From Haliotis cracherodii (Eukaryota), in NCBI RefSeq assembly GCF_022045235.1, contig NW_027266319.1, forward strand, positions 55,924,001-55,988,000: a DNA stretch of 64,000 nucleotides. The letters are read 5' to 3'. A model generated the notes under the pieces. It was not told the origin of the DNA, did not search any database, and saw only the letters and a list, made by a program, of their open reading frames with translations. Below, in pieces: positions 14,439-15,718 of this stretch (its first letter is position 1; the number at the start of each line of letters is the position of its first letter). A program made the translations under genes and the position numbers.

Positions 14439-15718
14439 ATGCGTTTGTTCCTTGTCCTCCTGCTTGTGGCCATAGTCTCCATCCCTCAGTCTGATGCTTG
14501 GGGACGACGGAGACGACGGTTCGTTAGATGGCGCACAGTTGGCACAATAGCACGGATTGGAGCCAGGGTGTTGTTGGGTGAGTGAAGCCAAAGAGTACTT
14601 CATTAAGTGCCTGTCATACAGTATCTTCTATTTTCCCAAACTGTAATGGAGTTACGGTTTAAGTTATAGAACAATGAGCGGCTGTAGTAGGACCAAATCG
14701 GTGATGTATCAAGTACATTAACGTCTCTCTTTTACATCAGGTTCAAATGAAAATAATTAATTAAATGCCTAAAAGGCCAACTCTGCTTTCAGTGTAGAAA
14801 TTGTAACCAACAAGATGCTTTCTATAATCATGCAGTTGTGTAGACCGATGCTCATGATATAAGTCACTGGATTGTCTGTGCCACAACAAGTTATTTAAGG
14901 ACCACTGTCGTTAAGCACTACAGAATGAGACAAGATGTTGTTCGTTATTTGTTTTGATGTAAATTTAAGTCAGTCAGCCAAAGAGCTATATACATGTACG
15001 ATGACGATTTGAAATGGAAACGTGTATATGTTTTGGAATGTTACTGTAGATGTATATAAATATGTTCATTTGATATCAATACTCATAGCCTGATTAAAAG
15101 TGACCACTATCTCATATTCCTTAACTGAAAATGCATTCGTGTTCTTTATTTTGTATCTTTCCAAACATGACTATTTTCATTCAAGGCAAACGAAATGTGG
15201 ATAACCTTGATACAAACATGGACGGCACAATTGACCTGTCCGAAGCTGAGACGCTAATGGACAGACGATCGGCCATGGAGCTCCTTTCGTTCTCAGATGA
15301 AAATGGTAAGAGCTTTTGCCTTCAACTTCATTGATACAAATGAAATGTTTATTACTTTTAAAATAATGTAATTATTTGTCAGATGTTTGTATTTTTTTAC
15401 TCTCATGGGTAATGCGTACCCTTTTCCCGAATAAATCTGACTCCTGAAAATTTATTCTGACTGATTGCAACAACCTTTCTCCATTTAGGAGACTCAAGCG
15501 TGAGTTTGGAAGAGTTCGCAAGGAGCATCAACAACTTGGAGCAGTGAGTCAAATGTAAGGTGGAGCAAATCTTACTGCAATGATCCGTTTTATACAGTAG
15601 AAACCGTCATCCGTTCAACATAACTGTATCTGAAAATGTATGCTTCAGCAATAATTTCATGTCAAATATGCCAAGATCATATGATTTGATGTATTTCTTT
15701 TGTAGATCACTCTATTGA
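14439..15718 (+). CDS. Secreted cationic peptide precursor with two EF-hands, copy 3 (K39R)
   Basis: Coding exons 14439-14577, 15186-15305, 15489-15543, 15706-15718; open frame; signal peptide, GKR and both EF loops intact. Confidence 0.87.

Follow-up and report, generated by a model that had tools for sequence, protein, structure and literature searches.

The stretch of DNA analysed here, which we call the window, consists of 64,000 nucleotides of the black abalone Haliotis cracherodii genome (contig NW_027266319.1, here C56, positions 55,924,001 to 55,988,000, forward strand). It contains nine copies of a small gene, four on the plus strand and five on the minus strand, and the copy under study is c3, whose start codon lies at 14439. 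Judged by its sequence, c3 is a real gene of four or five exons and is predicted to encode a secreted prepropeptide of 105 residues, in which a signal peptide is followed by a cationic core of 26 residues, a Gly-Lys-Arg (G-K-R) site and an acidic propiece with two EF-hands. The parts of c3 are the following:

13863..13870, plus strand: TATA box TATAAATA, read directly
13895..13919, plus strand: non-coding exon 1; its 5' end is approximate and its donor, CTG/GTAAGT, is at 13919/13920
14426..14577, plus strand: exon 2, with 13 nucleotides of 5' untranslated region (UTR), the ATG at 14439, the signal peptide and the cationic core
15186..15305, plus strand: exon 3, with the remainder of the Gly codon, K-R, EF loop 1, the linker helix and the first part of EF loop 2
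15489..15547, plus strand: exon 4, with the remainder of EF loop 2, the exiting helix and the stop codon TGA at 15545-15547
15706..15815, plus strand: candidate exon 5 or 3' UTR, with AATAAA at 15796-15801

An earlier preliminary description of this DNA had proposed these exons from the sequence alone, and the exons, their GT-AG junctions and the joined product could all be read as it claimed, as could the TATA box, the non-coding exon 1 and the AATAAA. The start of exon 1 is an inferred, unmapped position that was placed from that of the TATA box, which itself lies in an 81-nucleotide block (13840-13920) with 97.5-100% identity across all nine copies of the window. Intron 1 ends with the acceptor AG at 14424-14425. 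The coding part of exon 2 comprises 46 codons, 1-20 for the signal peptide and 21-46 (14499-14576) for the core, and the exon closes with a single G before the donor GTGAGT, which puts intron 2 in phase 1. Exon 3 follows an acceptor AG at 15184-15185 and starts with the GC that completes the Gly codon; it carries a canonical 12-residue EF loop 1 (D-x-N-x-D-G-x-I-D-x-x-E) and the first four residues of loop 2. It had been proposed that both G-K-R and the second EF loop are formed across splice junctions. This holds for the two Gly codons, that of G-K-R being split G/GC by intron 2 and that of EF loop 2 G/GA by intron 3, but the K and R lie wholly within exon 3.

In the database work the exons were searched singly, and the full-length searches used natural RefSeq proteins in place of the joined c3 model. 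The product of exon 2 is identical to residues 1-46 of the RefSeq models, while a genomic open reading frame (ORF) search with the exon 3 part only led to two clusters of H. cracherodii RefSeq proteins, of 104 and 105 residues, that also have members from H. rufescens and in which every protein is named "uncharacterized protein". The spliced c3 product equals the 105-residue model (P0002 and others), and RefSeq thus predicts the same protein in two species. The gene had been called hidden; it was indeed missed by the prokaryote-style ORF list, but it is hidden from that list only, since RefSeq already predicts the protein, annotated though unnamed. A paralogue, P0021, is encoded on an ENA contig of 502 nucleotides, which is probably a spliced transcript because it is too short to hold introns. 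Concerning the C-terminus, the proposed product matches RefSeq, but the RefSeq proteins terminate at the c3-type stop of exon 4, ending ...LEQ, and the S-L-Y ending given earlier, which would need a splice from 15543 to 15706, is only a candidate. The unused frame of 15708-15788 (plus strand, first base) weakly resembles the acidic tail of the 142-residue paralogue P0016 (shuffle p = 0.006, this one paralogue only), and BLASTP of the candidate exon 5 frame against the paralogue tail gave no match. The sequence suggests that the 105-residue subfamily has lost its acidic tail through the TGA at 15545.

Read directly, the N-terminus of c3 has the n-h-c layout of a signal peptide, with small residues at -3 and -1 (S-D-A). 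The 26-mer that follows it has a charge of +9 (residues 1-12 contribute +7 and residues 13-26 the other +2), an isoelectric point (pI) of ~12, 46% hydrophobic residues, eight Arg and no Cys, so that the earlier claim of a signal peptide before a cationic, Cys-free peptide is upheld; in amidated form its predicted monoisotopic mass would be 3205.94 Da for c3 and 3177.93 Da for the K39 form. Across the family the cores are likewise Trp/Arg-rich and nearly always Cys-free, with charges of +7 to +18. The suggestion that the 26-mer is probably amphipathic was not borne out: over its whole length the peptide has a helical hydrophobic moment no greater than that of its shuffled versions (p ~0.9), and its best 18-residue window reaches only 0.36-0.41. 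An amphipathic helix was therefore rejected in favour of a polar Arg/Trp head with a hydrophobic tail. Strongly amphipathic windows (0.8-0.9) occur in the longer cores of paralogues. The G-K-R site had been recognized correctly in c3, and Gly followed by one to three basic residues (G-K-R, G-R or G-R-K-R) precedes EF loop 1 in essentially all of ~70 relatives. Variability across the family is lowest at this Gly-basic site (0.73 bits) and highest in the C-terminal half of the core (2.43 bits).

The propiece has a charge of -11. EF loop 1 corresponds to residues 55-66 and EF loop 2 to residues 84-95, with calcium ligands at positions 1, 3, 5, 9 and 12 in both. In Pfam the 105-residue form falls just below the thresholds (EF-hand_1, 22.8 bits against a cut-off of 25.4; EF-hand pair, 20 against 30), several paralogues have precomputed EF-hand matches, and the family profile finds calmodulin-type EF pairs in the PDB (E from 1e-10 to 1e-12), with an inter-loop linker that is ~7 residues shorter. 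The canonical loops and these profile matches confirm that two EF-hands are present. Two AlphaFold2 runs, with a mean predicted local distance difference test (pLDDT) score of 59 and 53, both gave a helix-loop-helix twice, and in the second G-K-R forms a low-confidence break; these scores are too low for a fold search, and therefore only the secondary structure is quoted.

That the gene is multicopy was borne out by the nine copies in the window and by the array to which they belong, which extends beyond the window and counts 22 copies in ~160 kb (C56, 55.90-56.06 Mb). Of the nine, seven are intact and carry G-K-R, another carries V-K-R, and the remaining one combines an in-frame TGA with D-K-R. 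The copies other than c3 are the following:

3579..5550, plus strand: copy c1, with an in-frame TGA at codon 30 and D-K-R replacing G-K-R
9800..12882, minus strand: copy c2, intact, with G-K-R and Q17H, head-to-head with c3
19171..21156, minus strand: copy c4, intact frame with V-K-R, identical to RefSeq P0011
34068..36143, minus strand: copy c5, intact, with G-K-R
37452..39534, plus strand: copy c6, in which a 3-nucleotide deletion drops one Leu before G-K-R, identical to the 104-residue RefSeq P0001
49847..51923, minus strand: copy c7, intact, with G-K-R
52763..54849, plus strand: copy c8, intact, with G-K-R
61220..63281, minus strand: copy c9, intact, with G-K-R

Copy c1 is likely a pseudogene, and c4, having V-K-R, has lost the amidation Gly. 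Intron 2 of c2 (10416-12153, minus strand) is ~1.7 kb long, compared with 608-722 bp in the other copies, and probably carries an insertion. Three pairs of copies are arranged head-to-head with 839-1308 bp between their first exons (12883-13839, 36144-37451 and 51924-52762), and these intervening regions may be bidirectional promoters.

In the whole array the G-K-R, the frame and the splice sites are kept in 20 of the 22 copies. Among the 19 complete copies the mean pairwise difference is 1.2% in exon 2, 1.9% in exon 3 and 0.5% in exon 4, as against 6.7% in intron 2, 7.7% in intron 3 and 5.9% in the upstream sequence, which makes the exon divergence 4-10 times lower than that of the introns. 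The multicopy pattern cannot be due to chance, since all complete copies keep both GT-AG and frame while the exons diverge so much less, and the coding exons are therefore maintained, either by purifying selection or by exon-biased gene conversion. The variable codons of the array comprise 8 synonymous and 9 non-synonymous ones, the latter mostly conservative (K/R, V/L). Between species the differences are found in the core: when H. cracherodii is compared with H. rufescens, 5-6 of the 26 core residues are changed versus 1 of 79 elsewhere (Fisher p = 0.003). Such core-concentrated divergence is typical of defence peptides and toxins.

Relatives from H. rufescens, H. rubra and H. asinina, with lengths of 91-146 residues, came out of the full-length searches. 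When these Haliotis proteins are aligned, no variation is seen in the signal peptide, in the Trp that follows the cleavage site, in G-K-R or at most of the EF-hand positions. Their cationic cores differ both in sequence and in length, from 24 to 43 residues in this alignment and roughly 24-44 across the family, and the longer paralogues carry an additional acidic tail. Two paralogue clusters on C56 (0.82 Mb and 2.35 Mb) have the same exon plan. A Haliotis profile searched against 1.84 billion representatives found ~25 further small proteins with the same full-length architecture. Some are additional paralogues from Haliotis; the vent snail Gigantopelta aegis contributes many genes, some of them automatically named "oncomodulin-like", and others come from the oyster Saccostrea echinata and from Pinctada fucata. 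With these profile searches the family is known from four Haliotis species, Gigantopelta and oysters, and the gene belongs to a family that spans the molluscs, whose members combine a conserved signal peptide and Gly-basic site with a hypervariable core rich in Arg and Trp, an EF pair and an acidic tail. A search of the ESM Atlas returned only leads below 0.9, to EF-hand clusters. In Littorina littorea, the anoxia-induced protein SARP-19 has two EF-hands (PMC3517415) and might also belong to this family.

Scanning the black abalone genome with the family profile gave at least 98 exon matches, at least 69 of them EF-hand exons; these counts are a lower bound, as 150 of 258 candidates were scored. 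The family exons lie in tandem clusters on C56, C23 and C6, and besides those mentioned above the scan found clusters at the following places:

C23: 7.33-7.41, 21.3-21.5, 41.1, 43.5, 46.05-46.28 and 70.4 Mb
C56: 0.72 and 53.86-53.90 Mb
C6: 21.06 Mb

Several of these further clusters show stop codons within the EF-exon match, and such loci may therefore be pseudogenes or have other exon boundaries.

The closest described relative of the abalone protein, and a homologue by sequence, is the EFCBP of Pinctada fucata (P0047, ABF48089 / A5H002). The Haliotis-only profile matches it at E = 1.2e-9 over profile positions 3-122, and hhalign gives a probability of 98.6% and E = 6.6e-16 over 114 columns. 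In both EFCBP and the abalone protein the signal peptide ends in D-A ahead of a Trp, the core is rich in Arg and Trp, and G-K-R (G-R-K-R in one EFCBP allele), two EF-hands and an acidic C-terminus follow. EFCBP differs in an insert of 17 residues, and in Cys residues, located between G-K-R and EF loop 1, and the identity is only about 24-38%. The original description of EFCBP is reportedly that of Huang et al. 2007 (BBA 1770:1037). According to two papers that cite it, EFCBP is an extracellular calcium-binding protein with two EF-hands that is induced immediately on shell damage (PMC3120837; PMC7810044), and these papers contain no discussion of its cationic core or its Gly-basic site. In Haliotis diversicolor, a transcript annotated as EFCBP has its expression peak in post-larvae (PMC3517415). 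The preliminary description had not recognized the architecture as a named family. In our literature search no paper was found that describes it as an antimicrobial family, and the RefSeq LOC identifiers gave no matches, but the homology to EFCBP means that one member already has a name.

The likenesses to the layouts of myticalins and mytimycins that had been pointed out earlier both stand (PMC5577615; PMC8004829). Myticalins share with the abalone gene a signal peptide, a hypervariable Cys-free cationic core, a dibasic site that often follows an amidation Gly, and an anionic extension; they are also multigene, with a non-coding exon 1 and an exon 2 that holds signal and core and is followed by a phase-1 intron (PMC5577615). 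The abalone core, with a pI of 12 and 8 Arg in 26 residues, has the composition used to define myticalins (pI above 11 and more than 10% Arg; PMC5577615). Unlike the abalone gene, myticalins have three exons in place of four or five, an unstructured extension in place of an EF-hand pair, and a dibasic site inside exon 2, while the abalone K-R comes just after the intron; compared by eye only, their signal consensus (PMC5577615) also differs from the abalone signal. Myticalins are regarded as restricted to mytilids, with modiocalins in Modiolus (PMC12294457), and no myticalin was among the named matches of the full-length family searches. Mytimycins, the antifungal peptides of Mytilus, resemble the abalone gene in their signal, cationic peptide, dibasic site, anionic EF-hand extension and non-coding exon 1 (PMC8004829); the two extensions are likened here by their description and not by sequence, and the role of the mytimycin one has been called unknown (PMC8004829). 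The mature mytimycin has 54 residues and 12 cysteines, in contrast to the Cys-free abalone peptide of 26 residues followed by an amidation Gly. On the whole, what is new is a precursor of a linear cationic peptide with an EF-hand propiece, and what is already known is one homologue, EFCBP, published under another functional reading. The cathelicidins and preprodermaseptins of vertebrates and frogs likewise couple signal and pro regions that are conserved, and a propiece that is acidic, to a hypervariable cationic peptide, and their genes too are amplified in tandem, but these differ from the abalone family in their unrelated sequence, a propiece fold that is different or absent and the order of the parts, and the likeness is one of analogy only.

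Based on these data, we propose that c3 is one of ~22 tandem, head-to-head copies encoding a prepropeptide that would be processed to an amidated host-defence (antimicrobial) peptide, a reading that we hold to have about an even chance of being right. In this mechanism signal peptidase would cut after S-D-A and a furin/PC-type convertase after K-R, a carboxypeptidase would trim the K-R, and peptidylglycine amidating monooxygenase (PAM) would turn the exposed Gly into a C-terminal amide, releasing a 26-residue peptide with a charge of +9. The N-terminal Arg/Trp block would then bind anionic microbial surfaces and the hydrophobic C-terminal half would insert into membranes, which would make the peptide antimicrobial, while the acidic, calcium-binding EF-hand propiece, with its charge of -11, might keep it soluble and harmless in the secretory pathway. 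We favour a defence role because a near-universal Gly-basic site stands beside a hypervariable core, the species differences are focused on the core, the genes are amplified and the composition is cationic and Trp/Arg-rich; the myticalins and mytimycins, which the precursor resembles in its layout and in its EF-hand propiece respectively, are peptides of tested activity (PMC5577615; PMC8004829). From the patterns at the level of sequence, the role of an undescribed defence-peptide family is plausible. The black abalone genome holds loci of the P-domain convertase and Cu2-monooxygenase families, which is consistent with processing; the matches to the latter family do not separate PAM from DBH-like genes.

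Several observations weigh against the defence reading. The 26-mer is not the amphipathic helix that might have been expected, and when compared with PDB chains it has no match at E <=10; the relative P0159 has a neutral, uncharged hydrophobic core; and the charges of core and propiece are only weakly correlated (Spearman -0.38, p = 0.04, uncorrected for relatedness), for which reason the idea of a charge-matched propiece was abandoned. In the first, low-confidence AlphaFold2 model a single helix runs from the core through G-K-R. A cut after K-R would leave EF-hand 1 with ~5 residues of its entering helix. Finally, EFCBP is described, in the papers cited above, as a shell-formation calcium-binding protein and not as a peptide precursor (PMC3120837; PMC7810044).

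The main rival is that the protein stays uncleaved, as a small extracellular EF-hand calcium-binder of ~9.6 kDa with a basic N-terminal arm that acts in shell formation or repair or in calcium handling. We consider this unlikely, although the homology to EFCBP (profile E = 1.2e-9; hhalign 98.6%) and the full set of calcium ligands in both EF loops speak for it, as do the immediate response of EFCBP to shell damage reported in those papers (PMC3120837; PMC7810044) and the peak of the H. diversicolor transcript in post-larvae, a shell-building stage (PMC3517415); the C-terminal half of the core could, in the low-confidence AlphaFold2 model, be the entering helix of EF-hand 1. A structural helix, however, needs no near-universal Gly-basic motif next to a core that is hypervariable and of variable length, and both core-focused divergence and at least 69 tandem loci would be unusual for a calcium buffer. 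Moreover, since a damaged shell is a wound open to microbes, the induction of EFCBP fits defence equally well. The second rival accepts cleavage and amidation but gives the peptide another job, as a neuropeptide or hormone, a pheromone or settlement cue, a toxin or deterrent in mucus against predators or foulers, or a cell-penetrating or reproductive peptide. G-K-R is a classical amidation signal of neuropeptides, a conserved prepro region with a variable core is also typical of toxin families, and the uncharged hydrophobic core of P0159 and the post-larval peak in H. diversicolor (PMC3517415) would suit such a role. Yet neuropeptide genes are usually single-copy and their peptides conserved, while in this family it is the peptide that changes fastest and the genes have undergone massive amplification, and charges of +7 to +18 together with Trp/Arg richness are a hallmark of membrane-active defence peptides; we regard another job as improbable and rank it behind the uncleaved protein.

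Least likely, and in our opinion very improbable, is that the array is a recent segmental duplication, non-functional or unexpressed, whose coding look is merely inherited. One window copy does have a stop codon and one lacks the Gly, and the array is interrupted by retroelements, but the exons are 4-10 times less diverged than the introns, frame, splice sites and G-K-R persist in 20 of the 22 copies, the architecture is conserved in gastropods and bivalves, and relatives derived from cDNA exist (Pinctada EFCBP, ABF48089, and the 502-nucleotide ENA contig). Returning to the defence peptide, we can also put forward a wider proposal, which as a whole is doubtful. The EF pair may serve as a calcium-dependent intramolecular safety catch, in which the hydrophobic half of the core forms the entering helix of EF-hand 1 until the convertase cleaves; the response of EFCBP to shell damage may be an antimicrobial wound response that links repair and immunity; the EF-hand exon of mytimycins may have been borrowed from this family; and the scaffold may be ancient and mollusc-wide.

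Withering syndrome, a bacterial disease, has made the black abalone an endangered species, and a major defence-peptide locus would therefore matter for the genetics of resistance. If the defence reading is true, at least 69 loci in one abalone genome would place the family among the largest candidate effector families in gastropods, common to the vent snail and the oysters. Very few Cys-free linear antimicrobial peptides are known in molluscs according to recent reviews and the MyticalinDB paper, and for abalone only molluscidin, haemocyanin or histone fragments, macin-type peptides and LGBP-derived peptides are listed (PMC11767717; PMC12294457). The family gives a testable reinterpretation of EFCBP and bears on the role of the mytimycin EF-hand (PMC8004829), and it makes available dozens of natural Arg/Trp-rich, predicted amidated peptide sequences for synthesis.

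Other elements were seen around the gene copies. ORFs of retroelements interrupt the array at 22592-28893, 40351-44827 and 36-1673; one consists of a reverse transcriptase (an ORF of 1062 residues) accompanied by an RNase H ORF, another, which is DIRS-like, of a reverse transcriptase followed by a tyrosine-recombinase (Phage_integrase) ORF, and the window opens with a partial reverse transcriptase. Intron 1 of c3 contains, at ~14141-14240, a tRNA-like segment with a B-box-like GGTTCGAATCC motif that resembles a remnant of a short interspersed nuclear element (SINE); ARAGORN and Rfam gave no match on this segment. Blocks of tandem repeats with a period of ~8-16 nucleotides occur once per array unit (16791-17124, 33404-33690, 55544-55803 and 58783-58989), each holding a run of N (16799-17023, 33413-33583, 55565-55700 and 58808-58948, respectively), and shortly after the end of c3, at 16391-16450, there is a (CA)n/(TG)n microsatellite.

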